A stretch of DNA of 64,000 bases from Hydrolagus colliei (GCA_035084275.1 CM068769.1:1798001-1862000), one strand, 5' to 3'. Shown: positions 32,735 to 63,972, counted from the first letter of the stretch. Numbers and translations: made by a program. Notes: generated by a model from the letters alone, not told the origin.

Positions 32735-33060
32735 ACTCGGTGTTCAGAGCACTCCACTTTCAAGTGTGTGTTCGAATCCAGGCAGATCAGGGCGAAAGTT
32801 TGGACATGTTTCCTTACACCACAAACACGCCTAGTACTGATCCGTGCGAATATAAATACCACGTTAATAAAATTGCAGATTTCAATCCAAGAATGTTTGT
32901 GGGTCTGGCAGCCGCGTTTCGCCCACAAACATACAGTCAGTTCACTTTACAGTCTACTCTCTGAAGCGCTTTAAGACCTCGATAAGATGTGAAAAGCGCT
33001 GTATCAATTGCAAGAATTGTTATTATTATTATTATAATATTATTATTATTATTATTATTA
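32735..33060 (+). mobile_element. tRNA-derived SINE, near full length, with (TAT)n tail
   Basis: GTTCGAATCCAGGCAGATCAGGGCG head, core and tail. Confidence 0.85.
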
Positions 33061-33154
33061 ATTAATGTGTCCTTTCCAGTTGCATTATTCTATTGTTAAG
33101 TAATTAACTCAAAACACGTTTGTCTTTGGGAAATTCTGTACGATTGGTTGACAA

Positions 33155-34065: not shown

Positions 34066-34534
34066 ATAGAGTGATAATGTTTCTTGAATGGATTACCATC
34101 CTGGAAAAGGCGACATGCTAATTGAATATTAAATGTGTACCAACTCACATTTCGGCAAACAGACAATAATACTAATAATCTATGCGTTTAATATAGTGCC
34201 TTACCACGTCCTCGAAACGTGGAGGAGCGCTTCCCTGGTTGTACTGTGCTTTTCCTGTACTGTCTATGTTATGGGATAAATGCGGCACTTACATGCGCAC
34301 AGCAGTGACACACAAAAAGTCGTGCATTGAAGTGATCATTTTAATTAGGAATTACGACACGCGGAAAAGCGATCAATTATTAGATTAATAACCGGATTCC
34401 TATTTACTCCTATGTATTTAGAAGCGAATGGTGTTAGAAACAGTGGCCGATCGTTGGGCGTGGTGCGAAGCGAACCAACAGTCTTATCGTTTGTGAAGCG
34501 AGTATTTTAATCATTGAGCTACAGCAACCTCAGC

Positions 34535-35018
34535 ATGTTTTTGTACAGGCTCCTCTCAGACATGCAGCACTGTGCTCTCTGCTGCACAGAAGTAAGTGGC
34601 GGCGTCTGTCACTCGCACGTCTCTGATTGTAAGTATGCTGTTCTTCTCTTTTGTATCAACCTCTTATCCTCTCATCCGCCTTTACCTCTCTTTTTCCCAA
34701 CACCAATAACCCTATGGAGCTGTTTCCATACTGTTTGTACCATTGGAAGGCGCGGACTTCACCATTGGTCCTGCAATCTACAAATACATTTCCATTTTCG
34801 TTCTCTGTCATGGATAGAGGTCTCCGTGTCACTTGGCTTTCAGACAAAGCACCTGAAAAATAGAAATGAACATTCTAGGAAACAAATTGGGGAACACAAG
34901 CACACCCATCGACAATTTTTATGATTTCACAATTACACAAAGCTCTGATTCTCCGAATAAATATGTGACTTACACAACAGTGTTGTCACTAAATATACAA
35001 ATATATATAATGGATTGG
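34535..35018 (-). pseudogene. TCR V pseudogene V10 (family D): V exon 34574-34852, 23-RSS 34535-34573
   Basis: GALSESQVTRRPLSMTENENGNVFVDCRTNGEVRAFQWYKQYGNSSIGLLVLGKREVKADERIR, frameshift, VDTKEKNSILTIRDVRVTDAATYFCAAE. RSS is CACAGTG, 23 nt, ACAAAAACA. A leader lacking ATG ends at 34975 with GTAAGT. Confidence 0.92.
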
Positions 35019-39536: not shown

Positions 39537-39647
39537 TCACGGGTACACACTGACTGCGGCGTACACTGTACCATCGTCATGAACGATTTTGCAGCGATTC
39601 TCAATCCGGTTTCCTAACGTCAGACTGGCGTAGTTGAGATCAGAGTC
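39537..39647 (-). CDS. Terminal cytoplasmic exon of copy A with ITIM (LNYASL) and ITSM (TVYAAV)
   Basis: TTTGTGCAG acceptor, then DSDLNYASLTLGNRIENRCKIVHDDGTVYAAVSVYP*. Confidence 0.88.
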   Translation of the reverse strand, partial: DSDLNYASLTLGNRIENRCKIVHDDGTVYAAVSVYP

Positions 39648-41134
39648 CTGCACAAAGGACGACAGTCAGCCCATTTGCTTAGGGTTTCAGAGGGAAATCC
39701 CAAAGCCCACCCTCACCCATGTTGGGATGCCCAGCCAGCATGTGTGTGAGCGATTTGTGCGTGTTTGTGTATATGGGCAAGTAGGCTTGAACCTCCACCA
39801 TTTGAAATACCATATCTCTGTCGCTTTGTCTTGCCTCCTACAATTACATTACGAAGAACCACCTCTACGACCATTCCATCGTCCACCGTGTTACTATGAA
39901 GCGCTCTTAAACGCCGTCCGACGTGGAGGGCGTTATATCAATCGAAGTTGTTGATACCCCTATTCTTCCTGCATTCTGTGTCTATCCACACAGCAAGGGT
40001 CACACACGTACACGCGCAGACATTTGAGGTCGTGCGAACTGCTGGCAGTGCCGTGAAATGTTCATCAGATGCTGCTCGAATTTGGGAACCCAACGCAGCA
40101 GCCAAATTATGCACAGCAACGTCACACAAACACATTCCGTCTCCCCCCAAAACTCTCTACTGCCTGTGGCAATAGCCCTGCTGGCTGAGTTTGACTGAGC
40201 TAGGGTCTGAGCTGAGCTGTGCCAGCCTTACACAAGGCACATGCTTGGCTCGCGCAATATTTAGTTGATGGTGACATAGGACGTGAATTCTGCTGAGCGA
40301 GGAGCCGACTGAGGATTACAGTATGGCTGAGCTGAGCTGCAACTAAGCTCATACTGGGCCTGAGCTAACGTAAAACAATGATTCTGTCTCTACTCACTAC
40401 TGGAGGCACCAAGCGTGGAACGATTCTCACTGAAGCATCTGATACAAAAGTAAACAGTGTATAGTACTAGCATATGACAGTTAAACTCAACGTTAATCAA
40501 TATCATTGTTAATCTTATAATTAAGTACATTCTGTGATTATCGATGAAAATGACAATAATAATAATTTGATAAATAATAGTATACTTGCAATTTTGGCAC
40601 TGAATTTAACTGACTTGTCATTTCGTCGAGACATCCCAAAGAGTTTCATAGGGTTCGCCGTTTAATGCAGTTATTGTTCGTATTTTGAGTGACTCAAATC
40701 ATATAGTTTGGGCACAACAGTGAGCCGCAGAATGGCAAGATGAATGACATATTTTATTCATTTAGTGGACAGCTATAAAAATTATATTGCCTTTGTGAGC
40801 AGTGACTCCATATGTCTAATGTGAAACTAAAGAGCCAGACGGACATTCGTTTTCGCATCTCACCTGAAGGGCAGAAAACTTGAAGTGGATTAAATTCATT
40901 CAGACGGTCAGACACACATGATCAGATACACAGTTAGACACATGGTCAGAGACACAATCAGACATGCAAACAGACAAACACACTTGTAGACATTCATTCA
41001 AACACTGACACACATATTCAAACGGATAGCCGAAGATCTTCAGGGAGAGGCAGCACCAGAGAAAGGGTAAGAGAACAATGGCCTCTAGCCTGACAGAAGA
41101 TCATGAACAATCGTTCGCGTCCTGTGGGACTAAG

Positions 41135-41425
41135 TTACATGGCTAACTAGGCGCCTGGCTGTATCCTTTTCCTTTGTGAAGACAGAGGCGAAGTACTCAT
41201 TCAGTAGATCAGCCATGCCCTCTGCCTCCACAATGACATTTCCTCCTAGGTCCCTAATTGGCACCACCCTATCCTTGACCAACCTTTTACTCTTAATATG
41301 TTGGTAAAAAACCTTAGGGTTACCCTTAATCTTACTCGCTAATTGTTTTTCATGCAGTCCCTTTGCCCCTCTAACTTCCTTTTTTAGTTCATCAACATGA
41401 TGACAGGAGTAGACCATCTTGTCTT
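41135..41425 (-). mobile_element. CR1 ORF2 internal fragment in an intron of receptor copy A
   Basis: KQLASKIKGNPKVFYQHIK...MADLLNEYFASVFTKE. Confidence 0.85.
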
Positions 41426-42964
41426 ATAATGTGTTCCCCTAATTTGATAATTAGATCATTAAATGTGTGCGGGGTGATGAGTGAGGTTGGGGACGGGGGC
41501 GGTAGAGAGGTTGGGGGGGTTTGCGGGAAGCTGTGTGGTAGGTCCAAGCTAGGTGTGTGCCTCGTGTGAAAACCCATTACGGTGGTGATGTGCTCGAGTC
41601 ACACTTGCTACAATTGGCAAATTCCTTCGTTTGTTATGATTATACAACAACAAATTAACAAATTACACTGATAAAGGATACAGTATCTCTGCCACCCTAT
41701 GCACATTAGCATAAGGCACGGGGTGAGAAGGGGCAGTGTGTGGTTTCTCCAAATTGTGCATAGGCATAACTGCTTGGGTCTCACCAGCCGACACCTCATA
41801 GCTTTAAGGCAGAAACTCTGTCTGGCAAAATTTATAGCGATTTATAGCGATTATGAATTAAGACAATTCCACCGTTGAGGGCTTTGTCTTGCAGAAATAA
41901 CTGAACGTGAGTGAACGGAATCCTTCTCCCAGTGTCTCCTTTGTCATCCTACACTTGTTGAATAGTGACAGTGCGAAAACCAGCACGATGAGTTGAGTTC
42001 TGCGACGTAAATGGGAGAAGAGTTGCGAAGTACAGAGAAGGGGCGAGCAAAAATATATGTAAGATGGATAGAGAGCAGAGTTTAGAGTAGAAGTATTCTT
42101 ACCTTTCTCCACTTGGACAGTTCTTTTTAGCTGCAAGAACGAAATGTAATAAAAATGAAACATTGGTCAGTACTTACGTATATTCTTGTGGTTTTATTAA
42201 TAGCTATTTGCCATTTCAGCCAGCGTCAAACACTGAAATGGTGATTATGTATCTTGGGAATGAAGTACATCAACTAATTAGCTTACTAAAGTGTCCCAGA
42301 AATTACTATTAATGAAATGATCAACAAAATGGATGGAATTGTTAGCCAGGACAACTGGGAGAGAGAAATTCCCGTCTCTTTTCGAATCGAGAAAAAGCAT
42401 GTTTACCTTCAACATGAACCGTTAGACGGGACCTCGGTTTGTAAGTCTCACCAATGCTATCGACCGAAGGATTGAACATTCAAGCAACACTGTCATACCA
42501 TAGCAGCTTCAACACATTGACTATCACAAAAAATGCTGTCAATTCAAGCCAACAGCCTACAATCCTCGACAGTGTCATGCAAGCTAAGCATAGTATAATA
42601 CTGCCCATTGACTATTATGTTACTGTAAACACAGAAATACTTGTTTGATGCTGCCGATTGTCTCCCGGTAATAGATATTAAAAATCAACAACTGGTTTTA
42701 AATCGGGAGACAGGTTCCGGTTTAAACCAGAATATCCATAATCAAACTCTGCTACCCTGATTTGCTCTGAGAGGATAGCCTGCAAGGGGAGCTTTCTATA
42801 TTATTGCAAGTGGTTGACATATTTGGTGTATCTCTGTTCTCATGCTCGCAATAGCACACATTGAAACACCAGAGCAACCACACAAAGTGTTTAATGGCAC
42901 CGCTGGCTCCAACATGTTTCCGAGCAATTCTTTTCTACATTCACAAACATTAGTAGACGCTTAC

Positions 42965-43063
42965 CTCTCCTATACACACAGATGGCAGGGAAAATTACAG
43001 CGATCACTATCACAGTGACAATTCCCGCAGCAAGTACTGCAATGTGTATCCATGTCCACTTTC
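42965..43063 (-). CDS. Transmembrane exon, receptor copy A
   Basis: CTCTCTAG acceptor, 99 nt KWTWIHIAVLAAGIVTVIVIAVIFPAICVYRRG, GTAAGC donor. Confidence 0.88.
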
Positions 43064-43515
43064 CTAGAGAGGGAACGGGTAAAACAGCAATTGTAAGAGC
43101 TAACAAAAACGGAAATTCATGATTTTGCTATGGTTCAATAATAGCTCTTGTGCAACAGCTCGATCTGGGGTCAGCACACCTTGTCTCACGAAGAAAAAGT
43201 ACATCTTAACTTAGTGAGGATTAGTTTAGAAATGGAACCACTCCTACTGTTGAAAGCAGCGAGAATTGATACACGATCCTGTCGTGTTGCTATCGTTCGT
43301 GAGTTTCGATTTGGAAATGGTTTTAGTTTCCAAATGGGATGTTTTTACCGTCCTTAGGGATAGGGCTAGGTTTAGGGGTTAGCTTTTGGGATCAAACAGG
43401 ACAAACACCATGCGATTACATAAAAATGCAATGGATTCTGTGGTTTTTACGGGAGCTCTCCTAAATTTCTAAAACAGAAATAGGTTATTGTGTGAGATTT
43501 TTACTCAATGCTTAC

Positions 43516-43800
43516 TGGATGCACTGATTCGCAATCGCTCGCTCTCCGGTGATGTGAATTCTCGTCCGCCTATGTTTGTAGTATATTGACACCAGTAATT
43601 TCCTTTTCGGATTCCTGATAGGTTGAATGTAACCGGCTTGTTGTTCTCTGCAGCCACCTGTGATGTGACAAAATCGCCGTCTCTGTATAACGAGAAATTG
43701 CTGCCAGAATAATTCCCAGCACACGAGATCTCAGTGTTTTCTGCTCACATTAGCACCTGGTAATCTGTCTTCATGGAAATGTTTGTCTTCTGAAGTGGAT
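43516..43800 (-). pseudogene. Ig C2-type domain exon resembling LILR/LAIR/OSCAR/IGSF1-type domains
   Basis: 285-nt phase 1-1 exon (TTCCAG...GTAAGC): PLQKTNISMKTDYQVLM*AENTEISCAGNYSGSNFSLYRDGDFVTSQVAAENNKPVTFNLSGIRKGNYWCQYTTNIGGREFTSPESERLRISAS. It shows the C...F-x-L-Y...F-x-L...G-x-Y-x-C-x-Y...S-P-x-S pattern. Stop at 43745-43747. Confidence 0.85.
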
Positions 43801-45479
43801 CTGGAATTAATACACATTATACATAATCTCACAAACGGTCGCCGTGATCGGTGGTGGTGTTGCAGTCAAAATCAGCACCGACATTCAGCCCAGCACCAGC
43901 CTGTGAAACTGTTTATGTCTGAGGGTTAGGTAGAGGCAAACATGTGCACTTTTCTCAATACCAGGAATTAGCAGCTAGCCATAGTGTTCTCCTTCAGACT
44001 GGGTGTCTATCTGGCTCAACGTCACATACTCCCACTCTGATTCAGAGAGTTCTTTGTTGAAAATGCAATGTAAGTTCAATATTAATGTTTTCAGCCAACA
44101 ATACAGGCTGACGCTGCAGTACCGCGCTGGGAGAAAGCAGGATAATAGACTTTGGGGGAGATTTAAAATGGAAATTCTGGCCACATCCTGCCCAGGTAGA
44201 TACTAAACATCCCGCAGCTGTCTTTGAAACAGAATAGTATTTCGACTAGCTGCCGTGATCAACAGTGCTTCAGACAAAATGGGAAATTTGGACTGGCAGT
44301 TCCAGGCGAATGATTTCAAGGCACCTTTGTCAGCTTTATAGCTCTCCACAGAATCTGCCCCACTCGTCGTTTGTAACCTCCAATAACCCCGCATCTCCGC
44401 CTCCCTCCCCTCCTCCTCTCCACCCTCCCTCCGCACAACTGTCTTCACTCAGACATGCTTCACCTCGCGCCATCGTCACTGCAGCACTAAAGCTCCCGCC
44501 CTTCCGACACCATTATAGCCAATCCGACATCTAGCCACTTAGCCTCTTTAGAAGTCCAACAGTGAGACCCTCTGACTACATAAATTAAAGCAACAAACAT
44601 AATCACACGAAACCTCGCTCTGATCTGTGCAGATTGCTTCTGCCTCAGGTTTACTATGAGATAGATTTGTGGACTGTTTTTAAACCTCGGCCAGTGTAAG
44701 CTGTGGTCAGGATCAGCTCGGGGGTGAGAGTGAGCTTGGGGACAGTGTGATTTGCCGACCTGTGTGAGCTGGAAGCCGGTGTAAGCTGGTGTACAATATG
44801 AGCTGGTGGCATTGTGTCGCTGAGGAGATTCCCTGTTGGGGATGAATGTGTACTGCAGATAAGTGACAGTTCGGTGTTGGGGTCACCTACCCACCAGGCA
44901 CTGGCTCAGAGTCAGACACTGCCCTTGTTAAGCTCTCTTAGATGCTACACGACGTGGAAGGCGCTATTTAATTCTAAGTTGTCGCTGTTGCTCATCTGCC
45001 CAAGCGTTGTCCTGAGCTTCTTCAGCAGCGCTCAGCCACTGTCTCGCACACAGTCCTCCACTTCAGTTCATCTCATTCCACCTGCGTTGAAACCGGTCCA
45101 ATTGTCTCCTTTTCTTCCCACGTTACTCATTCCCTCTCCCTCAGCCCATCCATCCCTCGGTGCTCAGCCTCCCCATATGTAATATGCCACCAACTTGTGC
45201 TCAGCCTTTCCCCCATTACTCAGCAGCTCCTGCTGTGATCAACGATGGCATGGTGGTCTAACTCACCACTGTATAGGTACTAAACCTTGCTAACCCACCC
45301 TAGCGTGCTCAGCTCCTTCCTGTGTGCTCATCAGCTTGTGTTCTTCCCAACCTGCGTCCTCAGTTCTCCGCCTGTGCTCAGGCCACTTGTTCTGAACCCC
45401 TGTCGCAACGATCAACCTTCACTCTATTCTCAATCCCTTCCTCTGTGATCACCTCCGCCTCATCCATATAGTAACTCTG

Positions 45480-45955
45480 TATACGACAACAACAACTTCG
45501 ATGTACATAGTGCAATCACGTCGGCCGGCGTCTCAGAGCGCTTCAGATTAGCGGATCCCGGGAACGAGCCATGGGCACGGGCTGAAAGGTGACGAAAAGC
45601 TCGCTGGAAGAGGAAGGTCTTCAGCTGGGAACTGAAACTGGGAAGAGAGGGGGAGAAGCGAAGGGAGTGAGGAATGGAGTTCCAGAGCCTCGGGGTGTAG
45701 TGACTGAAGCTAGTGCCGCCGCGGGTTTTGCGGAGAATTCGGGGAACATGGAGGAGGCCAGACCCAGACGACCGCAGAAAGCGGATGCTGGGTTTGGGTG
45801 AGAAGAGATCAGAGAGATAGGCGAGTGAAGGGATTTGAAAACAAGGCTGAGGATCTTGAAGTCGATCCTCTCTCGGATAGGGAGGCAGTGAAGTCTTGCA
45901 AGGACTGAGGTAATGGGGCAGCGAAGCTTGAGGGTTGCAGTGCACTCACCCGCCC
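45480..45955 (-). mobile_element. L2 LINE 3' fragment between the SRCR and Ig exons
   Basis: PITSVLARLHCLPIRERIDFKILSLVFKSLH; L2 tail near 45490-45545. Confidence 0.85.
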
Positions 45956-46111
45956 TTGTGCTCCCGTCTGTGATCAAACCCCTGAAGTCATAACTCTCTG
46001 TGTTCAAATGTACTCACTGTCCTTTTTGCGACCCATCCAGTGCTCACCACCCTCCTTCCCTCCACCCCACACATAGTGAACTTGAAGATGATCAGACGCA
46101 GAGTTACTTAT

Positions 46112-46401
46112 CTAAGCAGATGACGGCGGCATTATTGTCGTGTGACGGGAAAATATTGAATCCAGGAATCTGAGGGACATTCCTCTGCACTGAACATCAA
46201 ACGTCACAAAGAGACCTAATACTTTCCCAAAGCGAGCATCTCCTGGTGTTGACATTGCCACTCCACAGCCCAGCTCCTTGCACACCACAGCCGCGTCCTT
46301 TATATCCCAGCCAGAGTCAAACACTGTCGCCCACCGTCCATCGTAGCGAACCTCTGCTCTCCTAGCACACATGCTGCCTCCATTCGCAAGTGTCATTCTC
46401 C
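46112..46401 (-). pseudogene. SRCR (group B-like) domain exon, degenerate
   Basis: RMTLANGGSMCARRAEVRYDGRWATVFDSGWDIKDAAVVCKELGCGVAMSTPGDARFGK...VQCRG, shift, CPSDSW...HDNNAAVICL. Acceptor CTACAG, donor mutated to ATAAGT. Confidence 0.92.
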
Positions 46402-47559
46402 CTGTAGCATATCAAACAAGATGTTTATAGTCTGTCTCTTCTTTGACTTCACGTCAACCAGTATACAATAAACTGCACCTGTGCCTGACTCATTGGGAGG
46501 GTGTCTGCGGCATAAACTGTACAACAAGGATAATAATGACTATAATGGTAGCAGTGAATGATTGCAATATACAGTCCACATCCTGGGTACCCCAATGACA
46601 GACGCAGTTTATTCCTTGGTGAGCTGCACACGTTTCACTTACGTTTGCAACCAAATAATATACTATGGAATAAAGATTTCAGTGTCATTATACTTTATGT
46701 TATTAGATTTTGTATTGCAATACATTGCAATATAATACGATACTGTACGTTTCTTCATATTTTATATTCGATTATCAAGCTTCGTAAGTGATTGTTATAT
46801 TTTATATTAATGTATTTGACATATGATAATAAATTATAGTTCCTTATTATAAATTATATTATATTAAGTACTTGTACTTGATATTCTTATACGTTATATT
46901 ATATTTAAGGGAAAAACAAATATAAAATTGGTCACGTCAATCCATGACTGTTTGTGTCAGACCGACTGATGTGCGACATTGGCTATAACTCTTTTCCCGA
47001 AAATAAAGCAGGCAGTAAAATGTATAGCATACTGGTACAGCTCTTCAAGATATCTAGAAGAAACGAAAGCACAAAATCAAATTGATGCATTAATATTTTA
47101 TTACGTTTTAAGAAATTATAATATATATTTGACGTGATTATAATTCATAATAAATGTTATAATATTTATTGAACTACTATGTTTTAAATTCGATTATTAG
47201 TACGATAGGAGATCCCACATGAATATACACCTATGCTGTTTTAAATTACTGCACAACATATTCATAAAATATATCGCTCTAGAACGGTATGTGATATTTT
47301 AAATAAATTAGGTTACAGAATAGAATATTTTGCAGATAAATATTGTTACTTGAAATATAGCTGATGAAACATAAGAGAACCTAGAAGCCAAATGTGACCT
47401 TCGCATGTGTCCTAGCAAGACTTTTCCGTTATGGTATACATTATACTTTCAAGTCAGATATTCGGTTATTGGCAAATACACAGAAACACACAGACAATGT
47501 CATTTTAATAGCGTAATTAACAGCTCTAGTATGTTTCATGGCAAGTTACATAGTAGTGT

Positions 47560-47800
47560 GTCAGACCTTCCGCACTGAGTTGAGAAAAAATGTCTTCACT
47601 CAGATTTCAGAGAATGTATGGAATTCTTTACCACAAACGGCCGTTGATGCTCAGTCCTTGAACACACTCAAGACTGAGATAGATGGATATCTCATTGATA
47701 AATGGAATAAGTGGTGGGGATCAGGTGGAGTTAGACTGCAAGATTAACCATGATTGAATGATGGGGCAGGTTAGAAGGACCGAATGGCCTACTACTACGT
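47560..47800 (+). mobile_element. CR1 3'-end fragment
   Basis: TFRTELRKNVFTQ...VWNSLPQTAVDA. Confidence 0.78.
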
Positions 47801-50800
47801 CTTACGTGCATATGTTCTTATATACATAAACACAGAGAGATAGGTGTTGAACAGTGAAAATTGATAGAGGTCACAGCGTCACAGCTCCGCGAATTGAGAG
47901 CTAATCTTTCCTGGGGGCAGCTCTCTGGAACCCAGTCAATATCGTACATTTTCTACCTAGCTCCCATTTTCAACCCATCAAACAACTTCTTTAAACCTAG
48001 ACATACAGCAGCCACAGCTACAAGAAGAAAATCAAATTGCATTTGTCGAGTCAATGTGACGCAGAGAGCCAAAGCTGCCTATATGGTGGGAAAGAGATAG
48101 AGTATTCCAGAGATTTGAAATATAGAACCTGATAGGTCAGCCATCAATGGGAGAATAAAAGGCCACGAGCGACAAGCCAATAAGCTTTAATAGCGTGGCC
48201 TGTACATTATGTGATGATTTGTTTCCCCACTCTCTAGATGTAGGTAATTAAACGCCAAGACTCACCCGTAGGAGCTAATGTTCCAACAACAGCTTCTGGC
48301 TGTGAAATCATGTCATGACCCGCAGATTCCACCATTACTCTCTCCAGAAATATCCCAGTACAAGGAAAACAAAACAATGTATAAAGCTAGAAACATTAAT
48401 ACAGCAATTCAAACTATCGGGGAGATGACCTGCCATTTTCTCTCGCGCAAGTGTCGGAGATTATATGTTTGGTGCCAGCTCTGAATCGGAATGTCCTCTA
48501 TCATCTTCTCTGTCCTCTGCTTTCTCCTCCCTCCTTTCTAGTATCTCTTCTCTTTTCTCTATTCTCTCCCCTTTTCCTCTCCTGTTCTAATCTCTCTCTC
48601 TCTCTCTATGTGCATTTCCCTCTCCTCTGTCTCCTCTTTTGCCTCCCTCTATGCTGTCTCCAATCTGATATCTAATCGCTAGCAATCTCCGCTCTATTTG
48701 CTCTTCTCTGCTATCTACTCTCCCCCTCGCTCATCTGTCTCCGTCGTTTACTCCCCAAGCAACTTACCCTTCATTCTTTCCAGGATAGTAAGCCAAAATT
48801 ACTTTACATAGTATATTTCACAACAACAGGACGCCCAGCGGTGGACAGCGGGAGATTTGCAGCAGAGCTGGTGGTTGAATTCAGTACAGGTGTTAAGCAG
48901 AGAAAGTACGGCTAATAGGGTGGCAGAAGGCACAGTTGAAAAGAACCTCTTGAGATGTCTCCCGATGGAGTCAAGCGAGTTCAGCGACTGTGGGATGGAG
49001 TTCCAGATGGTGGGCGCAGAGAAACTGACGGCCATCCCGCCTATGATGGGGCGGTCTACGTGCAGATAGAGACAGCCAGAGTGGACTACAGCAGCGATCT
49101 GAGGGTGAACGACAGTTGACGGTCAAACATGATGCTGTGGGATGAAGTCATTGTTTGGGTTATTAACAATACTCATAGAACAGGAGAAGCATCTTGAGAA
49201 TGGATACGGAGCTGTACAGTATCATAGCTTGGAAGTGCGTGTCTGGGTCTTGGTGATGGGGGCAGGTATTTTCCGCAGACTTGGATATAAACAACACGGT
49301 GGAGATGTTCGTGACAACTCTTGTGGCGATCGCTGAATTCCGTGATCCACAAACGCGAACTTCCCTGTAACACGTCTGTGCACTCACATCAGGAAAGCAT
49401 CTCAGCTGATGATGTCTGTTAGTGTAACAACAACTCAAATATCTGCAACCCCGCCCACTATAATCTGCCAGTTAATATTAACCGTTCAAGCTCTGTGTCC
49501 ACAGGGGAGAACAAGTGTTGCTTCAGCGCATTGGACTTCAGCAGTGACCCACAAGTCCAAATAGGATATGAAGAACTTTGAAATTATGTACCGAAGATTT
49601 AATCGGATGATACCAGGGTTGAGTGACTGCAGTTATGTGCAGACACGAGAAACATGAGATTGGTCATATTAGGTTAGTGAATTTACGGGAACGTTTAGTG
49701 GATTTAGTCATAAAAAATTTCAGCCCATTGAAGAAGTAGCTAGATAGATTCTTTGTTCCACTGTTATTACCCGAATGACACAGGTCAATGGCAAAAGCAG
49801 CGGAGTGGACACAGGAGAAGCAGATTGTGTTTACCTATCAAGTTATTCACGTAGAAAACACACTCTCTGAAAGTGTGGTGGAAACAGCTTCTATAAAAAC
49901 ATCCAAAGGGGAATTGGGAAGGTACTTGAAAATGGAAAGGGATGCGACTTCTAGCGCAGATGAACGTAATTCAAGAGGATAAATTGGCAAGGCTATGCAT
50001 CAACACAAACCACAGAGCTCCTTTCACGTCGGGAGGACGTCCCAATTTAGGTCGGCATCCGAGAAGGGAGGAGAGGGGTGGAAGGGGTGCGGTGGCGGTG
50101 TGGGGGCGGGTTATGGCTAAGGCAAGTAGGAAAGTGGGGATATTTAGGAGGGGAACGGAATGTACCCTCGAAGAGGAATGTTTTGAGATCGGCCGTGAAG
50201 CAGAAAAGGGAGGAAGTGGGGTAAAGGGATTGCGGTATGAATGTGTGGGCAGAGAGGCTGAGACCCCAACCGTCGATGGTAGGTCAGATGGGGCGGGCGA
50301 CGTGGAGCAATTAGTGCCCGCTGAAAGGAGGGGACGTAAAGGCTGATAAGAACGCAGCAGGTCGGAGAGATAAGGGGGCCAACGTCGTGAATGGCCTTGA
50401 TAGTTAACTAGGTAAATAGGCGAAAGTTAGGACTGGTTCTGTCTCCATTTCAATGTGCTGAAAGACCTAAATCTTGGAGCATGCATGATACAATGTTTTC
50501 ATAATGCATACAATGTTGCCAACCTGTGGGATCCTGGCAATTTCACGCAGATCATCACAAGGAGCAGCTCACAAAACATGCAATCAACTCACTTTATGGT
50601 GGAATCTGTGAAGCTTTTTCTTATATCTTGAAGATCTCATGCCTTATCAGAGCCACAAATTGCAACCCGAAGCATGGCTCTGACGTTCTTCCTAGCTCGC
50701 ACCCTAACCCTAAATGGAAACCCTGACGAACAAATCAAACCTTGACCCACAAAAATCAACCTGGACCGCATTTAGACACTAATACTGAGCATCGTCATTT

Positions 50801-51457
50801 ACATTTTTGATTTACTTGGCGGAAATCAACAAAATGAGACAAACTAAAACGCAGTTTCTGAGAAGCTCACCGAGTAAAAAATAGTTGAGATAAAGCGACT
50901 GGGATATGAAAACTGACCTCTGCAGTGTGCCTCTGTACCGATACATTTATGCTTCAGCACATCACGGCATCAAAACAACTGGAAACCACCACCAACTGCG
51001 AAGAGAAAACAAAAGTTGCTTGTCTGTCTGTCAATCATTTTTGTATCATTCTTGCCTGCCTGCTTGCCTGCACGCCCCTTCGCCCGCCACACATCAGAGC
51101 AGTTGTCCAGAGAAATTCAGAGAACAAAGGCTCCGTGACACAAACTGTGTATTCATTCATTTTATTTTGATTGAATGTATGTTTGCTTAGTTTGTCATAA
51201 GAATGCAGTAATAACAATCATTGCATTTGATATAGCGCTGTTCACATCTCATGGACGTCTCAAAGTGCTACACAGAATACACTGTGAATTGATTCGATAA
51301 CTGCGGGCGAAACGCGGCAGACAATTGCACACAGCAGTAAGATAACAATCTGTCGAAGATTTAAAAACGGCACAAGATGTACTTCAATTGATTACCTCAA
51401 CCGAGAGGGCCAGAGACAGTGATGGAGAGAAATCAATTGAGAGATAGCCGCTCTGTT

Positions 51458-51494
<37 letters not shown>

Positions 51495-54400: not shown

Positions 54401-55014
54401 GCAGGAATAGCTGTTATTCTCGCTTCAGAATAATAGAATGTGCCAACCGTCAGTAATAACATTGGTCATTCCCACCCAGGCTGTTTGTGGGACGCTACTA
54501 GAACAAAAACGAGTTGCTACCTGCACTCGCAGCATGCACAGTCACTTCAATTCATTGTATAATTTATAACGTATCTTGTCCTGTTGCTGAGAAGGACTAT
54601 CTGCCAACAGCAAGAATTATTATGCTCTTGGTTGCGGAGGAGGTACAGGATGAGCATACAAGGCCATTTGCTTCCCTAAACAATGCCGCCCCTACTACAT
54701 TAAACAAGGTTCAGCTCTCATCCTCTCTCACACACTGGTCTCTCGCATTCTCCATCTCACACACTCTATATCTCTCTTTGTCAGTACTTCTCCCACACGC
54801 TACTACATTCTCTCTCTCCCAACGCCATCTGTTTCTCTCAAAGTTTCAATAACTCTCTCTCACAAAATGCATCTGATACCCTCAGTTTACTACTATCTCA
54901 CAGACAATGTCTAGCACACAGGCTGTGCCGGTATCATCCTTCTTTTGCATATGATCCATTGCCTCTGCATAATGTCTATCATTTGCTTAATAGAACTATA
55001 AACGGTACAGTATG

Positions 55015-55355
55015 GTAATAATAACATAATAATCCTTGCATTTCATATAGCGCTATTCACATAGTATTGGCGTCCCAAAGCGATTCACAGAATATATTGT
55101 AAAGTGAATTGACTGTATATTTGGGAGCGAATCTCGACAGCCAATTGCGCACAGCAGCGTCTCACAAACAGTCGTTGATTGGAATGACCAATTTGATTGT
55201 TGTGGTATTTTGGGAGGGATTATTATTAGGCGTGTGGAGTAAGGAAACTTGCTCAAGGTTTCGCCCTGACCTGCTTCGATACGAACATAGGTCGCCCCAA
55301 CTTGTTCTCCCAGCTTGCGAGTCAAGTGCTCTAACCAACAAGCCACATGAGCTCC
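55015..55355 (-). mobile_element. tRNA-derived SINE, near full length
   Basis: Reverse complement of the head, core and tail seen at 24993. Confidence 0.85.
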
Positions 55356-56149
55356 GAAAATGTGGTGGAGTCCGATGCGATAACAACTTTTAAAAGAGAG
55401 GTAGATATTTATTTTTGGAGCATGGGTTTACACGTTTATCGGAAGAGAGCTGGGGAGTGGATTGAATTGCTCTTGTCGAAGACCCTGCATAGACCTAATG
55501 GCCTCCTTTTATGCCATAGTTTTCTGTTATGCTATGATTGCTCGCCTTTATTCCATCTAACTATCTATTCTAGCCGATTTATTTGGGCTTGTTGAAATCT
55601 CGCATAATATTAAAATACCAAGTAAATACACTTCCCCAATTTGCTCTAGAAGTTTCTCAGATTCTGCAGTTTCCTCCAGATGAATTCGAATCCAATACAA
55701 AAGTGATAATACTGAATATGTTGTCAAATTTCAACGGCTGATGTGTCGTTGAACCACCGTCAAGTTGTTAGCTTAGCAGCGTTGTCAAAAAGCAAGCCGG
55801 AAACGAACAAAGCTTCGCAACCTCCTTCAACTTCTCGCTCATTTGATGGATTGACACAAAGAAACAAACAAACCGAGGAGCTGAAATTCGCCAAAGATGG
55901 ATTATCTAAAACATTTGAGTTGTGTCTACTGATGTATGTGTTTCCATACCAAAATGTTTGCCTCAAGTTGACATCAGACCACTTAATGAAGCTTCACTTG
56001 CAGCCAACGGCTGCAAGTGAACAGCCAACAACAAAACATTCTTGTTTTTCTTTTTTTTTTGTAAAGCATTTATGTCTCTCTCTCTCTCTCTCTGTCCTAA
56101 TCTCTGCCTCACCCTTACACATATATGCACACAATGTTCCGTTCGCAGC

Positions 56150-56153
<4 letters not shown>

Positions 56154-56197
<44 letters not shown>
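56154..56197 (+). repeat. (CT)n microsatellite; other dinucleotide runs at ~21380-21405 (GT), ~29308-29335 (AC), ~51455-51500 (TG/AG)
   Basis: Directly visible. Confidence 0.9.
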
Positions 56198-56200
<3 letters not shown>

Positions 56201-56884
56201 CCTCTCTCTCGGTTCATCCCCTACAAGCTAATATATTGGCTATGCTGTATTTCGGACAGTTGTTAACAATCCCGTTAGTCCATTGCGGAAGGACATTTAA
56301 GTTTCTCAATGTGTTCTGAGACCGTACAAACTCAATTCAAGCCTGATCAGTTTTTTTGTTTAACTATTGCAGACAGTGTCAAACGGAAAAAAGATGATGG
56401 ATAGCTGAACATTTGTTGTGGTTTAGCTGAGCAGCATTACCAGGTAGAAAACACAAACCATATCAATCTGCCTGCTAAATGTGCTCACACAAGTAACTGA
56501 AAAATGAACATCAATATATAAGCACAGCAAAGAATTTCTGTGCTGGATTTTTAATCCTAACTTTATCTGCACAGAACCAATTTGAATCTTGAATACGCGT
56601 TACAATAGTTGATATTTAAAACAAATACTGCCCTTATCACGATTTGGAGTTGCTCTACAAAAAAAACAATTAATCAAAATGCATTTAGTTCAAAGGCAGC
56701 ACATTAGACACCCATTTCTAAGAAGTAGATAGAGTGAGACGAGTCAGCGACGTAACAAAATGAAGTCGGTCAGCTCAGTGGTAAGAGCATTCACATCGCA
56801 ATCTTGAGAGCATGCGGTCAATCCATGGGGAGATTGAAACGTGAGCCAGTTTTCGTTATTCCACACACATGCTTCTATTCACCA

Positions 56885-57375
56885 GCAGTAACAACAACAA
56901 CAACCTCGATTTAAATAGCGCCCTCCACGCTGGATGGCGTCTCAGAGCGTATCACAACAACGAATCACGAGACCGAACCAGGGGAAGGGGGAAAAAGGCG
57001 ACCAAAGGCTCGGTCGAAGCGAAAGACCTTGAGCTGAGAAGTGAAAGTGGGATAGGGTAGGGGGCGAGGCGAAAGGAGGGAGGAAGTGAGTTCCAGATCT
57101 TCGGGACGCACTGGCTGAAGGCACGGCCACAGACGGTGGAGCAGAGGATTTAGGCTAAATGAGTAGGCCAGATCCGGTGAATCGAATACAACGGATTCTG
57201 GTTTGAGTAGAGAGGAGATTAGAGAAGTAGGGAGGTGCAGAGTAATGGAGGGATTTGATGACAAGTGCGAGTATCTTAAATCGATCATCTCCGGAACAGG
57301 GAGCCAGTGAAGTCTGCTAAGGACTGGGGTAAAGGGGGAGCGAAGTTTGGTGCAGGTGAGAATCATAGGAAGGAA
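56885..57375 (-). mobile_element. L2 LINE 3' fragment
   Basis: PVLSRLHWLPV... with its own 3' tail near 56890. Confidence 0.85.
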
Positions 57376-57544
57376 CTCGCTTGTTCATCGATTATCGAAT
57401 TCCGGTGAAAATGAACACTCCATGATATATATATATTTCGATAGTAATAACTGTTTGCTCAGTGGATCCACGAATGTATGTGGCACAGTGTGATGTATAA
57501 TTTCCTTCCCTATTTGGCACTGCAAATACACAGCCATTACATTT

Positions 57545-58375
57545 GTTAGTATAACATCGGGCGCTGCCAGCCTCAACATCCAAGGCTGCACTCTCCATCT
57601 CACAAAGCCAATCAGGAACCTCGGCATCATGTTCGATCAAAAACTTTCCTTCCTCCCCCACATCCGCGCCTTGACCGGCACAGCCTATTTCCATCTGCGC
57701 AACATTGCCAGGCTCCGCACCTATCTTACCCCCCGCGCAGCCGAAACACTCGTGCACGCGTACATCACCTCACGGCTGGACTACGGAAACTCTCTCCTAG
57801 TCGGCCTCCCCAGTTCCTCCATTCATAGGCTGCAGGCCATCCAAAACTCTGCAGCCCGTGTACTATCCCGCACCCGCCTCTGTGATCACATAACCCCCAC
57901 CCTCGCCCGTCTCTACTGGCTCCCCATCCTCCAGAAGATCGAATTTAAGATCCTCGTCCTCACCCACAAGGCCTTACACGGCCTTGCCCCATCCTAATTA
58001 ACCGATCTACTCTCCCCCTACACGCCCACCCGGACCCTCCGTTCAACAGGACTTGGCCTGACCCAAGCCCCCCGCCCGAACCGCCACACCATCGGAGGCC
58101 GGGCCTTCAGTTTCTCCGCTCCCACCCTATGGAATGCCATCCCTCAATCCCTCCGTTTCACCTCTTCCCTTTACTCTTTCAAGGCCGATTTGAAGACTTT
58201 CCTCTTCGATCGTGCCTTTTGTTTCACCCCGAACTCTTTTACCTCCCCTTCGTGTTTCACCACTTCCCAAACACTCCCCTCCCAGCTCGCGTCACACGCC
58301 TCTTGTTTAGCGCCTTGGGACGTCCTCCCGACGTGAAAGGCGCTATATAAATGTAAGTTGTTGTTGTTGTTGTTA
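57545..58375 (+). mobile_element. L2 LINE 3' fragment with tail
   Basis: ORF 57629-57997 AYFHLRNIARLR...LVHAYITSRLDYGNSLLVGLP...LQAIQNSAARVL...WLP...FKIL; ends GTGAAAGGCGCTATATAAATGTAAG(TTG)n. Confidence 0.93.
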
Positions 58376-59961
58376 TAACATTCAAAACGATTCTAAACTT
58401 CTGGACGTTTTCCCGAAGGCGCTGCATCAGATATGAGGAGTTTTATAATGGATCACATTTGCGCAACACTCACACCCCACCCCTGTCATCACCCACCCAC
58501 CCCCAACCTCTCTCCCCCACACCCGATAAACCGGCCTCGTTTGCTGCAGACCTTGTAACATCTAAATACATAAAACCTACCTTGGGTGCTAAAGGAAACC
58601 TTGACCCGAACCATGGACATCACCAGCCGCCCCCTTATCCCCATCGCTGTGCGGTTTATTGGATGGAAATTAGCAGAAAGATTAAAACTCAAATCAGACA
58701 AACAGTGAGAGGCTGAACATTGAAAACACATAGCGAAAAACAGGCGAGGTGAAGAGTTTGAGGTGTGAAAACGAAAATGCGTGGGTTTCGTCACCACATC
58801 ACAGCAGCTACACAAGTTTTGCTGGCTGCAAATAGCAAAGAAAATCTCTGTATCTTGTTCCAACTGACTTTCTCTCCCCCCATGCTGGCTGGCTGGCGTC
58901 TTTATATCTACGTCTCTCTTCTTCTTTATCTCCCCCTCTCTCTTTCTCTGTGACTCTCCCTTTCACAATAGCTGTCTCTCCTTGCAAGCACGGTCAGTAG
59001 ACGCTTTCGCACAATCTCGCTTTGTCCATCAGTGACTCTCTCTCGTTCCCTCTCCTTCTATCTCTCTCTCTGACTGTCCCGCCGAGCAGCAGACTGCACT
59101 TGAACAGCACTGTATATTTTGCATGCGAAATGTTGTGGAAGTTTCCTTACTGCACACACACAAATGTGGACAGTCCTCTGTTTACCAAACAAAAGCCAGA
59201 TTCACAATTTTAACTCTAATGTTGGATCTCCAGATTCGGGAATGCAAACCTCAATATTACTGTCAATGCTGTGCGAACATTCTGCTGTGTTTCACTCACA
59301 GTATGGGCATACAATTCACTTTTCAGTATCAATAGTGTTGGTGTATCAGATGGAAGCATAATTACCATTATTGTTAATATGTATGACTGCGTATTGGTCG
59401 TGAACCATGGCATCTCCATAAAGGATTTGGGACGCTGTCATTCGTGAGGGACACTATATAAACGCAGGCTGTGGTTGCTAAATCAATGTAATAAGTGGTA
59501 TTTTTTCGATCAGATCAGGAACAATAGTAAAGGTCATACCAGTTTGAATCGCCTGATTGCAAGTGAAAGAAGTCAACATTTAGCGTTGCTACTTAATGTT
59601 GCCAAACATACAGTTACTTAATTCTACGTTATATTTTGTAAAGGTCTTTGAATGGCGTCAAAAGCAGGATGAACCATTTTATCAAATAAAGGATTGTTAT
59701 TGTTCAATAAAGTCACACTCACGCACTCAACCACTCAATCAGTTTATCTCTCGCTTAACATTTCTCTCACTCAATCTCTCTTTCTCAATCCGTCACACCC
59801 AATCTATATGATTCTCAATTTCTCTGTCACAGATGAGTTATCATGAAAGTTGAGATCAGCGCGAAGCTGGCAATGACCAAAGTGACGACGGGAGAAGGAA
59901 AGGCGAGTGAGATCACCTCGTGATCTCCAGCCTCTGAGCTACACTCTGACCGTGGCTTAGA

Positions 59962-62900
59962 CTATACCAGGGTCCACGTGTCTCGGGCATTCTCACTCCT
60001 GTTTCCTAACACCAGATTGGCGTAGGTGATATCAGCGACCTGCAAACAGGTTGACAATTAGCACATCTGCCGAAGGACAGTGGAAACCCCCCATTCCTCT
60101 TTCCAACACCGCACACCCACCGCTGAGAGGCCCCAAACCATAGATCCTGTGTGTGTGTTTGGCTGCGTGTGTAGTTCTCTCATTCATTCGTTAACTCATT
60201 CAGTCTCTCAGTGTTTGTGTGAGTGTGTGCATTCGGCTTGCAACACTGAAACTTGGATCTCCATTCTCCAGTCCCCGTTTGCTTGTTCGCTTTCCTGCGT
60301 CTCTCAACGACGTGATCAATACACTACTCTTCTTCGATCAACTTCCCACCCATATCCTACCTGCTTTCTGGATCTCCAAACCACAGCACAGGTCTAAATT
60401 CCTGACCGACTAGCGCCTTGGGATGTGCATACACAGATGCTGACATTTTCAGACAGACACATAGAAACACACATAAACGCACAGGCATACAAATATACAA
60501 CAACAACAATAACTCCTTAATCTTATAAAGCGCCTTTTATAAAGCGCCTTTCACGTCTTGATGACACACATAATCACACACATATACGTAGATGTAAACA
60601 CAAGTACACATAAACAAATACACAGATACTCACAGATACACACACAGAGACAACGTGCCATCCTAACCTGTGCTACATCAGTCTGACACTTAGCCTGGAC
60701 AAGGTTTTTTTCAGACTTAGACAGGGCGGCATTCGTATGACACAGAAACGGATCTGGGCTAACCCTGGCTGACACAGGGAATGAGCTATGCTGACAAGGC
60801 CTGAGCTGGCCTGATACAGGATCTGAATCAGGCCAAAATAATTATCCTGTCACCACTCACCTCTGGAGGCTTTGATCGTGGAGCTCTTCTCACTGTAGCA
60901 TCTGAAACAAACTAAAACGTTATTTAACATCAGCTATGTTGCAGTAAATCTCACCGGTAGTCATTAATAATATTGATGATATCAATACATAAAACTTAGT
61001 ATTTTTTAACGGAAATAATAATAATAACTATGCGACAAAGAGGGATAGAATATTAATTCTTGTATTAAGAATAAATCCTTATAATAACCTCAAACGATCC
61101 CAATGTGCTTCAGAATAGACGCGGTACAATGGAGAGACTGTATGTTCTCCCGATGGAAAAGGCGCTCTAGAAATTTATCGTTGATTCTATTTTTGCTATG
61201 CTATATAAGAGAGGGACATAAACATCCAAATTGCGAGCAATACGGACACAAAGACAGATAGTTAGACCACGTAAAGACACACAGGCAGATACATACATAC
61301 TCACAGCTTGACAAAGACAGACGGTAGTGAGACAGAAAGAGTGAGAGTGAGGCTAACAGAACAATAATATTAATAATCATCCTGGAATTTGATGTAGCCC
61401 TTTCCACATCGTCTTGAATTCTCAAAACGCTAGACGGAATATATAGTGAATTTTGTGAGCGAAACGCGGCAGCCAATTGCGCACAGCAGTGACGCAGAAA
61501 AAGTCGTGGATTCAAATGCCCTCTCATTTGGAGTAGTTTGATGAGCAAGCGATGGATATATGTGGTGCTCAGTCACACTGCTGACCAGGTCTGTCTGTGA
61601 CCGGCACCTTTCCTTCTAGGTTCAAACCCAGGAAACCTCTCACTCACATGTTATGTCGCTCGCTCCCGCAGGCATTCGTGAAAAGGAACTCAGACAGGAA
61701 AGAGGAATGAATTCACTGCTGTTTTATTCAAGAGCTGAGGTGTGGGGTTGTTTCGGCGACAACAAAAAATATTTTCTGTCAACTTGGGAATAGTGGATCT
61801 GACAGGATTGTTGCTGAATGAGCAACAAGGACATAAGGGGCTGAATAATCTATGCATTATAATATTGCGTGCAGATATGGTCTCAGATTGAAGGAAGGAT
61901 GTATTCGCCTATGTGAGGCGGAAGGCGGGTGGTGTAAAACATAGATTCACTAGGTTGGTAGCTGGGATGAGGGAGGAGCTATGAGACTAAGTTGAGCCAT
62001 CTAGGCCTACGGTTTGTAGAACATAGCAGAATCAGAGGTGATCCTATAGAAACCTATCAGATTATTAAGCGGCACAACAGAGTTGATAGCGGGAGACAGT
62101 TCCCCAGTTTGGAGAAAATATAACCAGGAACACAATATTACAATTATGGTTCAGCCCTTTCGCACTGAGTGACGGAAAAACTTCTTCTTTCAGATGTTCG
62201 TGAATTGATGGAAATCTCTACACCCAAATGGCTGTACATGCTCGGTCCTCGAAAATAATAGTCGGGGTAGGGGGAAGTGGAGGGAGAATATGAGAGGGTG
62301 AAGAATTAGGAGGATAACTGAAGGCACGGTCGAAGAGGAAGTTCTTGAGACCGGCCTTGAAGGAGGAAAGAGAGGAATTGAGGCAAAGGGATTGCAGGAT
62401 GGACTCTCACACGGTGGGAGCAGAGAGGCTGGCCTACTCCACGACCACCGATGGTGATGCGGTTGGGGCGGTGGACGTGGAGTAAGCAGTGCCTGCTGAG
62501 TGATAGAGATACACCATTTCGGAGGAATGGGCACGGGCAAGTCCTTGAATGGCCAGGAAGGTGTGGATGAGGATCTTGAATTCGACCACAGACTGACAAT
62601 TTTCTCGGACTCAAATTACGCATCTGGATAGCATCTGACAAGCTCATCGCTTAAAATGGGAACACTTGTTGCTCAAGCTTATTTCTGCTTGCCCAGTCAG
62701 GTCCACAGTTAGTGATTTGCCTTGCAAAATAAGCGGTACAAATACCTTATCATCAATGCCTGGCCTGGCCTTCTAAATCTTGACGGTGAGAGTTTTTGTG
62801 ATCACGATGGAGAGAGACCAAGGAATTGGCTCAGAGTAGAGAGCTCCAGTTTGGAGAGAGAGCAAAGGGAGATATGTTATGGAGAGAGAGGTAGAGAGCG

Positions 62901-63972
62901 TGAGCAAGGAATCAGATTAGAATAGAGAGCTTCAGTGCGGGAGCGAGCAACAACACAGACACGTTGCGGACACAACAAATAATGGGGTAATTGAAGCAAA
63001 GTACTTACATAGTGCTTTTCTGTTTGCCTGCAAATACAAAACGTAATAAAGCTTAAAAATGATTAAGTACATGTGGGGTATTGTTGCAAGATTTGTAATG
63101 ATAATCCTTCCCTTTTCTCCAATGCCAAAACTCTTCATAAGCGATCGTTGTCAATAACACTTCACTTTAAATAGCACCCCCCACACACATACATACAGAT
63201 AGAGAGCCTGTCACCAGCTTGACAAGCAATAGAACTGGATATGTAACCCTGCAGCACAACATTTTGGATCATTGTTAGCAATTCAATCGCCTCTGTTTAT
63301 CTAATAATATCAACAACAGAAACAACTGATCAACTACATCAGTAGGTACCCAAATTAGTCGATTTAGTGCGTCCATTTCCACCGGAAAATAATCCTTAAA
63401 AACTAAAAATGATAATAACAATCGGGTCAGTCAATGCACGGCTGTTGGTGAGAAACTGCTGTGCACAATTGGCATCTGAGTGAAAAAACACACGGTCAGG
63501 TCACCTGAAATTATATCCTCTGAATGTTGTTTGAGATGTATAGCAGAAGTAGTGAGCACAATATCGAATGGAAGAATTATTTCAGTAATTAACGTAATAT
63601 TGATAATTATTACTAAAGCTGGTTTTGTGGTATTACGATGAATATTATTAGCGTCACTATTATCATTATTTTTATCAATTTTTCTTTATTATCATTAGTA
63701 TTGGTGTCATTAGTATTTCTGTGATCTTTGTTGTTGCATTGTTATCGCAGTTATCAGGTAACAATCTACGGAAATGCACTGGATGGAAACAGACAGTGGT
63801 TGACTTCAATTATGCCTCTTCCTTTAGTTCCAACAATTATACTCTAAATTCCGTGACAATAATGAACATTCACCACTCTGATACACATAGAATCGAAGAA
63901 TGTTCGCTATGATCAATATCGCAGTGAGTAACCCCACTGTCAGTCCTGTTGTGTGCTTCCATGTCCAGTTTG
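59962..63972 (-). CDS. Receptor copy B (5'-partial): TM plus cytoplasmic tail with two ITIMs; ectodomain outside the window
   Basis: Exons 63874-63972 (99 nt), 63009-63027 (19 nt), 61648-61688 (41 nt, weak GAG acceptor), 60861-60901 (41 nt) and 59962-60039 splice in frame to NWTWKHTTGLTVGLLTAILIIANILRFYVYQSGKQKSTISFSRMPAGASDITYATVRRAPRSKPPEVADITYANLVLGNRSENARDTWTLV*. The TM, one 41-nt and the terminal exon are clearly paralogous to copy A. Confidence 0.8.
61890..62240 (+). mobile_element. CR1 3' fragment in an intron of receptor copy B
   Basis: AGAGGTGATCCTATAGAAACCTATCAGATT (RGDPIETYQI)...GAAAAACTTCTTCTTTCAGA. Confidence 0.7.
62240..62700 (-). mobile_element. L2 3' fragment
   Basis: GAATTCAAGATCCTCATCCACACCTTCCTGGCCATTC (EFKILIHTFLA) on the minus strand. 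Confidence 0.75.

Follow-up and report, generated by a model that had tools for sequence, protein, structure and literature searches.

The DNA analysed here is a stretch of 64,000 nucleotides from the chimaera Hydrolagus colliei (GCA_035084275.1 CM068769.1:1798001-1862000), called the window throughout and numbered from its first letter. Between 39537 and 63972 it carries, on the minus strand, one decayed copy (copy A) and the 3' end of a second copy (copy B) of a gene from a family in which SRCR domains are combined with immunoglobulin (Ig) domains of the C2 type known from the leukocyte receptor complex (LRC), a transmembrane (TM) segment, and a cytoplasmic tail bearing inhibitory motifs of the immunoreceptor tyrosine-based type (ITIMs). 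An earlier note, made from the sequence of the window by itself, had placed on this strand an SRCR, an Ig, a TM, a 41-nt cytoplasmic and a terminal exon, the last with the motifs LNYASL and TVYAAV; each was found where it had been placed, and the outermost positions, 39537 and 63972, were exact.

In the direction of transcription, copy A begins with the relic of a leader mini-exon 2 (48354-48320), which encodes ..IFLERVMVESAG, the C-terminal half of a signal peptide, and aligns with exon 2 at two loci of Callorhinchus milii, L001 (MU249876.1, the locus of the predicted protein P0002) and L003 (MU249905.1, the locus of XP_042201732.1, where the corresponding residues are VILLERKSVESA). It is followed by a decayed SRCR exon of group B type (46401-46112; preceded by cag and starting in phase 1), by an LRC-type C2 Ig exon (43800-43515; ccag/AT at its start and AS/gtaagc at its end, phase 1 at both ends), and by the TM exon (43063-42965), which encodes GKWTWIHIAVLAAGIVTVIVIAVIFPAICVYRR, keeps its splice sites (ag/../gtaagc) and is again in phase 1 at both ends. 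The 41-nt cytoplasmic exon (40438-40398; tcag/../gtgagt) encodes DASVRIVPRLVPPV, and the terminal exon (39647-39537) encodes DSDLNYASLTLGNRIENRCKIVHDDGTVYAAVSVYP and ends in a stop codon at 39539-39537; within it lie the ITIM LNYASL (39638-39621) and TVYAAV (39569-39552), which resembles an immunoreceptor tyrosine-based switch motif (ITSM). The frame runs without a break across the TM, 41-nt and terminal exons. A stitched query of the Ig, TM and tail of copy A found three C. milii proteins, P0001, P0002 and P0003 (XP_007883112.1); the TM exon is 52% identical to the TM segment of P0002 and the terminal exon 53% identical to its tail, and a counterpart of the 41-nt exon lies at L001 19457-19497. 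The exon order of L001 is that of copy A, with homology colinear to about 10 kb upstream. Because the exons of copy A align in the same order with C. milii genes and proteins, the matches are not due to chance. The ITIM by itself, judged by motif count, was rejected as meaningful: 39-64 kb, translated in six frames, contains its pattern 123 times, and, the pattern being so frequent, the motif in copy A draws its weight only from its conservation with homologues.

Copy B is represented by its last three exons, offset 20.4-20.9 kb upstream of those of copy A: a TM exon (63972-63874, minus strand; NWTWKHTTGLTVGLLTAILIIANILRFYVYQS) with 76% nucleotide identity to the TM exon of copy A, a 41-nt cytoplasmic exon (60901-60861, minus strand; DATVRRAPRSKPPE), and a terminal exon (60039-59962, minus strand) encoding VADITYANLVLGNRSENARDTWTLV before the stop. 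Their frame is open, with canonical splice sites, and gives the tail DATVRRAPRSKPPEVADITYANLVLGNRSENARDTWTLV. The ITIM is kept as ITYANL, whereas a 4-nt gap and a TAC->TAA change relative to copy A remove the distal tyrosine motif; the paralog that had been noted is thus present with the same TM, 41-nt and terminal exons, except for this one element of its tail. The exons for the ectodomain lie past the end of the window, just 28 bases remaining upstream of the TM exon.

The exons of copy A do not join into the spliced gene that had been proposed from them: the SRCR exon has a deletion, an indel and an AT donor, the Ig exon an in-frame TGA, and the leader a lost acceptor. When aligned as DNA with three C. 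milii SRCR exons, the SRCR exon shows a frameshifting deletion of 17-20 nt near 46180, after CAGAGGAA, and an additional small indel; its donor is changed from GT to AT at 46111-46110 (TTAG/ATAAGT, versus CAG/GTAA in all three homologous exons), and a conserved Cys is replaced by Phe in WATVFDSGW. The Pfam SRCR model PF00530 still recognises the exon (53.4 bits, cutoff 26.1, E 3.5e-14) as a partial domain, as the match spans profile positions 2-76 of 100 and the remainder needs two frame changes; a complete single-exon, in-frame SRCR domain of about 100 residues with its conserved cysteines is not present in the window exon. The SRCR domain of P0003 is complete (PF00530 positions 1-99 of 100, 109.5 bits). 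In the Ig exon a TGA at 43747-43745 interrupts the sole Ig-like frame (..DYQVLM(stop)AENTEISC..), which is otherwise open and has both Cys; the site is AGA (Arg) in the homologous exons of two C. milii loci and is open in 35 of 35 family Ig domains, where it is mostly Arg, with a few Lys or Ser. The leader mini-exon keeps its donor (G/GT) and has lost its acceptor by a change of AG to TG (gtacTGg/GATATT in the window, versus gtacAG/TAATAC in L003 and gtgcAG/TGATAT in L001); for leader exon 1 (MESLFLIF), neither the window nor L001 gave a match when up to 7 mismatches were allowed. Copy A thus carries at least five independent disabling changes (codon, donor and acceptor substitutions, the 17-20 nt deletion, and the small indel), and it has neither an open frame across all exons, nor canonical splice sites throughout, nor a leader. 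Its three short 3' exons are still open, and for about 84 codons to be open by chance is not unlikely.

We conclude that the region probably holds two tandem members of a chimaera SRCR/LRC-Ig family, about 20.4 kb apart on the minus strand, and that copy A (48354-39537) is a pseudogene, in view of the lost leader acceptor, an SRCR exon that has a frameshift and no donor, and an Ig exon cut by a nonsense codon. Several points weigh against this. Copy A retains open frames and good splice sites in its TM, 41-nt and terminal exons, and its Ig exon is intact but for one codon, so that its loss of function could be of recent date or a polymorphism; at L001, from which NCBI derives the protein model P0002, the SRCR exon is likewise broken (TGG->TGA), and some family members may work without theirs. 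Splicing is deduced from consensus sites and predicted proteins, and the signalling steps considered below would follow from motif analogy throughout.

The alternative that fares best is compatible with a dead copy A: copy B may be an intact, expressed, single-ITIM inhibitory receptor, leaving the cluster partly active, a real possibility to which we give somewhat less than an even chance. The open frames and canonical ag and gt sites of its three visible exons speak for it, as does the match of ITYANL to the IIYANL of intact relatives; on the other side, the C-terminal tyrosine motif has been lost, though those long-tailed C. milii relatives that were examined keep it, Asn and Arg occur in the TM segment (IIANILRF), and the leader, SRCR and Ig exons fall outside the window. 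It is improbable that copy A itself still works, either by skipping the dead SRCR exon and using the AG at 43742-43741 just after the TGA, or with the TGA as a null allele that only this individual carries; in both cases an inhibitory receptor of the Ig-TM-ITIM/ITSM kind would result, the three open 3' exons with canonical splice sites and an Ig exon with a single disabling change in its 286 nt would suit it, and P0002 shows that NCBI models a protein from a locus whose SRCR exon is broken too. Such a gene would, however, have no usable leader, exon 2 being without its acceptor and exon 1 having given no match with up to 7 mismatches; no pyrimidine tract accompanies the alternative acceptor (ACCAGGTGCTAATGTGAGCAG), its use would delete the A strand of the Ig domain, and 35 of 35 family Ig domains are full length. 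That the true gene is intact, and the lesions are mistakes made in sequencing or assembling a repeat-rich tandem array, is highly improbable: immune genes in tandem arrays do not assemble easily, there is an N gap in the window (27950-28120) and the C. milii relatives are on unplaced scaffolds, but at least five independent lesions of different kinds within 9 kb are rarely produced by read errors, and the adjoining variable (V) segments are decayed too, which fits relaxed constraint. Least credible of all, and very remote, is that the SRCR exon is a separate gene or relic juxtaposed by chance with the Ig-TM-ITIM exons, for although its AT donor cannot splice to the Ig exon as it is, and SRCR-only genes are present in C. 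milii clusters, the order and phases of leader, SRCR, Ig, TM, 41-nt and terminal exons recur in L001 and L003, the predicted proteins P0003, P0025 and XP_042201732.1 have an equal arrangement, and colinear homology with L001 extends from 10 kb upstream as far as the 3' untranslated region.

With copy A only a pseudogene and copy B visible only in part, the value of the finding lies in the family rather than in the locus within the window; the locus itself is ordinary (a decayed tandem copy), and what interest it has, a moderate one, is as a pointer to an uncharacterised and widespread receptor architecture. P0002 and P0003 each have an SRCR domain, an Ig domain, a TM segment and an ITIM tail, and both are named "deleted in malignant brain tumors 1 protein-like", in keeping with the expectation that such genes would be annotated automatically as DMBT1-like; P0001, named "IGSF1-like", has two Ig domains and a TM segment. 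XP_042201732.1 has a leader, three SRCR domains, two Ig domains, a TM segment and the tail motifs VTYATV, IIYANL and PIYATV, and its exons (two leader, three SRCR, two Ig, TM, small cytoplasmic and terminal) all map in L003. For P0003, P0025 and P0011 no encoding contig is on record. These intact C. milii proteins bear out the prediction of a multigene family, and a family joining SRCR, LRC-type Ig, TM and ITIM elements is real in a cartilaginous fish. An intact member is predicted to be a type I membrane receptor whose leader is spread over two exons; the leader is followed by group B SRCR domains (one to three), C2 Ig domains of LRC type (one to four), the TM segment, and a tail that carries one or two ITIMs together with an xVYAxV motif at the C-terminus.

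Decay of the SRCR exon is not unique to the window, because the L001 SRCR exon is also broken. The latter (L001 9893-10204, the SRCR exon of the P0002 gene) has a TGG->TGA change, because of which the NCBI model of P0002 starts at an internal Met and is without a signal peptide; the annotated P0002 gene may also be decaying. The Ig exon of L001 (14430-14715) is 98.9% identical to the second Ig exon of L002 (approximately 11305-11590); L001 and L002 are different unplaced C. milii scaffolds, and the two exons represent either a very recent duplication or haplotigs.

The family is considerably wider than the chimaeras. A profile search with HMMER (Ig-TM-tail) returned 614 representatives at E <= 0.001, including 63 at E <= 1e-30, and among the 152 family proteins examined (the 150 best profile matches and two found earlier) 48 also have SRCR. 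The nearest proteins to the window copies are all from C. milii, at 55-65% identity, and the intron flanks of the copy A Ig exon align with the C. milii paralogues at about 75%. Mosaics of SRCR and Ig domains were found in rays (Narcine, Pristis), in sharks (Heptranchias, Scyliorhinus, Chiloscyllium, Hemiscyllium, Heterodontus, Cetorhinus), in teleosts (Epinephelus, Leuresthes, Prochilodus, Ameiurus, Chanodichthys, Chaetodon), and in other bony vertebrates (Amia, Polyodon, Polypterus, Latimeria and the caecilian Geotrypetes); the idea that the architecture is specific to cartilaginous fish must accordingly be given up. Ig-only relatives without SRCR occur in Hypanus, Mobula, Carcharodon and the lizard Pogona. 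The database names of the family proteins are "uncharacterized", "DMBT1-like", "IGSF1-like" or similar. In Pristis pectinata a cluster of several very large family genes lies at 3.5-4.3 Mb of CM019895.1 (a record of 5.27 Mb; loci L005 and L006), and the genes there encode proteins that reach 3235 aa and in which as many as 23 Ig stretches are interspersed with SRCR domains.

For the copy A Ig exon the best Pfam model is that of the HIDE1 (C19orf38) Ig domain, PF17737 (34.5 bits, cutoff 23.2), and not a LILR model; the domain check on the stitched exons thus supported the SRCR assignment, for a partial domain, and not a LILR model for the Ig exon. The same model scores 39 bits with P0001, and 21.7 and 19.6 bits with P0002 and P0003, both below the cutoff. 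A profile built from 22 family Ig domains and searched against solved structures led with PirB (5.9e-17), LILRB2 (9e-11) and LILRB1 (5e-9), with FCRL5 (6e-9) close behind LILRB1, followed by NKp46 (1e-8), OSCAR (4e-7), and, lower, FceRI-alpha (2e-6) and KIR3DL1 (9e-6); CEACAM and Siglec do not lead. A single Ig sequence found NKp46 at 2.7e-5. For comparison of folds we used the intact relative P0003 rather than the broken Ig exon of the window: an AlphaFold2 model of its Ig domain (pLDDT 92.9) gave as first Foldseek matches NKp46, LILRA5, LILRB4, CHIR-AB1, PirB, LAIR1, LILRA2, OSCAR, GPVI and KIR, and the top 11 were all LRC members, with TM-scores of 0.70-0.83. By profile and by predicted fold, then, the family Ig domain is LRC-type, as the earlier note had held, with PirB, LILRB2, LILRB1 and NKp46 among the leading profile matches; an FcRL, CEACAM or Siglec type was considered and rejected, as LRC members lead by both measures. 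The SRCR domain of P0003 is closest to domains of DMBT1, CD163, CD5L and CD6, which belong to group B, the type with one exon and eight cysteines.

The tails of the family are built around ITIMs: LNYASL in copy A, ITYANL in copy B, and IHYASL, IIYANL and VTYATV in relatives. Those C. milii relatives that were examined have PVYATV, PIYATV or PVYANx as their distal motif, which is not a canonical ITSM. The TVYAAV that had been called an ITSM is indeed present in copy A; compared with the C. milii relatives, however, it is found only in this dead copy, and copy B has lost the homologous motif. Ig-only relatives from rays do have canonical forms, TVYADI and TIYADV. The short-tailed C. milii members P0025 and P0181 have an NxxR motif in the TM segment (GIVNVARLIVV); no short-tailed NxxR form is present within the window. 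Such an NxxR motif has been reported for activating LRC receptors of Xenopus (PMC6557307). By analogy, the family looks like a paired set of inhibitory and activating receptors. The intact SRCR and Ig ectodomain would bind a ligand, whereupon Src-family kinases might phosphorylate the ITIM tyrosines (I/V-x-Y-A-x-L/V), as in LILRB, PirB and KIR; the phosphotyrosines could then recruit SHP-1, SHP-2 or SHIP and damp signalling through immunoreceptor tyrosine-based activation motifs. Short-tailed NxxR members would, by the same analogy, pair with an adaptor of the FcR-gamma type and lead to activation.

The remainder of the window bears on the proposal that this cluster is linked to the distal end of the T-cell receptor (TCR) alpha/delta locus. 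Five V segments are present on the minus strand, as is copy A, with recombination signal sequence (RSS) spacers of 22-23 nt and heptamers at 34574, 28536, 8887, 4444 and 1645. The two nearest to copy A (28536-34900; heptamers at 34574 and 28536, 23-nt spacers) share a common frameshift, and the nearest heptamer lies 5 kb downstream of the copy A stop codon. All five look defective: besides the shared frameshift, the segment at 28536 also has stops, that at 4444 is without both canonical Cys, that at 1645 has a stop, and that at 8887 has an aberrant framework region 1. The best solved relatives of the segment at 28536 are TCR V-alpha and V-delta domains, and the segment at 4444 has mixed antibody and TCR matches; a word-based protein search with a V segment of the window gave no match. 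V segments do therefore adjoin copy A, as had been stated, but all are defective, and no joining (J) or constant (C) exon was noticed in the window, where no dedicated search for J or C exons was made. This end of the V array looks like a graveyard of pseudogenes, and a position at the distal end of TCR alpha/delta is putative.

A second case of V segments interspersed with the SRCR-Ig family is found in L003, where a V pseudogene (..NDAAT(stop)YCAL, with the stop in the YYC motif and a 23-nt RSS) and a partial V (29896-31213) lie between two tandem SRCR-Ig genes, in the orientation opposite to them. L001, L002 and L004 yielded no V segments, nor did the Pristis loci L005 and L006, and V linkage is for this reason not general to the family.

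Compared with known LRC paired receptors (LILRB/LILRA, PirB/PirA, KIR, NKp46, OSCAR, LAIR1 and chicken CHIR), the fish family has the same type of Ig domain by profile and by predicted fold, with one Ig domain per phase-1 exon, long tails with ITIMs, and short-tailed NxxR relatives; unlike them, it adds N-terminal group B SRCR domains. Its Ig domains are only about 19-28% identical to mammalian LRC domains, and no LRC framework genes were seen near the window copies, whose neighbours are V segments. The SRCR domains of intact relatives match DMBT1, CD163, CD5L and CD6 strongly, in common with the group that includes CD163, WC1/CD163L1/SCART, CD5, CD6 and DMBT1; like the membrane receptors with group B SRCR domains, the family members would be type I membrane proteins in tandem multigene arrays, and their automatic names are DMBT1-like or M130-like. 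In contrast, CD163, WC1, CD5, CD6 and DMBT1 have no LRC-type Ig domain and no ITIM/xVYAxV tail such as that of the fish family, and DMBT1, with its CUB and ZP domains, is secreted. The mouse protein FCRLS, in which we take FcRL-type Ig domains to be followed by a C-terminal SRCR domain and an ITIM tail to be lacking, differs from the fish family, whose SRCR domains are N-terminal, whose Ig domains are LRC-type, and whose members would be membrane-anchored. A published account (PMC4016189) describes FCRLS as a soluble mosaic in which Ig domains are combined with a group B SRCR domain. With HIDE1, a single-pass membrane protein, the family shares PF17737 matches above the cutoff for the window Ig exon and P0001; unlike HIDE1, which has one Ig domain and no SRCR, it has SRCR domains and often several Ig domains, and P0002 and P0003 score below that cutoff. 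A search of the literature for HIDE1 / C19orf38 as an inhibitory receptor gave nothing relevant. In the LITRs of teleosts the C2 domains are related to both FcR and LRC domains, and the tails carry ITIM and ITSM; unlike the SRCR-Ig family, LITRs are without described SRCR domains, a distinction drawn from their description. LITRs are known as paired stimulatory and inhibitory Ig receptors of fishes (PMC4810170, PMC7404264).

The claim that the architecture is undescribed agrees with our finding no description of an SRCR and LRC-type Ig receptor family in the literature searched, which excluded subscription-only papers, these not being searchable. A paper on LRC evolution mentions neither SRCR nor cartilaginous fish (PMC6557307), and according to a published survey (PMC4016189) sharks gave no homologues of LRC-type (C2-only) receptors, whose origin it assigned to the bony fishes. 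The present data suggest that LRC-type Ig domains are after all present in cartilaginous fishes, both with ITIM tails and in an NxxR TM form, and that they may have been overlooked because of the automatic names "DMBT1-like" and "IGSF1-like". Tentatively, and with the balance tipping slightly against it, we propose that LRC-type paired receptors (ITIM and NxxR) were already present in the jawed-vertebrate ancestor as mosaics with group B SRCR domains, which would survive in cartilaginous and ray-finned fishes, the coelacanth and caecilians and which, in chimaeras, would be interspersed and co-duplicated with TCR-type V segments. If true, this would move the origin of paired receptors of the LILR/KIR/PirB type back to the base of the jawed vertebrates, and would define an uncharacterised receptor architecture, SRCR with LRC-type Ig domains, of wide distribution among fishes. 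In the window and on one C. milii scaffold, where V segments are interspersed with the family, the co-amplification of immune gene arrays can be studied.

No other gene was detected at 39-64 kb: the 10 longest other open reading frames (41-62 kb) had no Pfam match and are repeat-derived or of low complexity. Repeats make up what is left of 41-62 kb. Retroelement remnants occur at 41130-41417, 45460-46007, 56890-58380 and 62190-62650, in introns and between copies A and B; one is an ORF2-like fragment, the others are tails of the form ..LWNSIPxSLR..LKTFLFxRAF, and they are 68-83% identical to repeats of the C. milii loci. The gap at 27950-28120 is a run of 171 N. At 7154-7898 the window holds a purine-rich tandem array with a unit of about GAGGGAGA and higher-order periods of 129-226, and it is this array that accounts for the spike of GC-skew and AT-skew at 6-8 kb.

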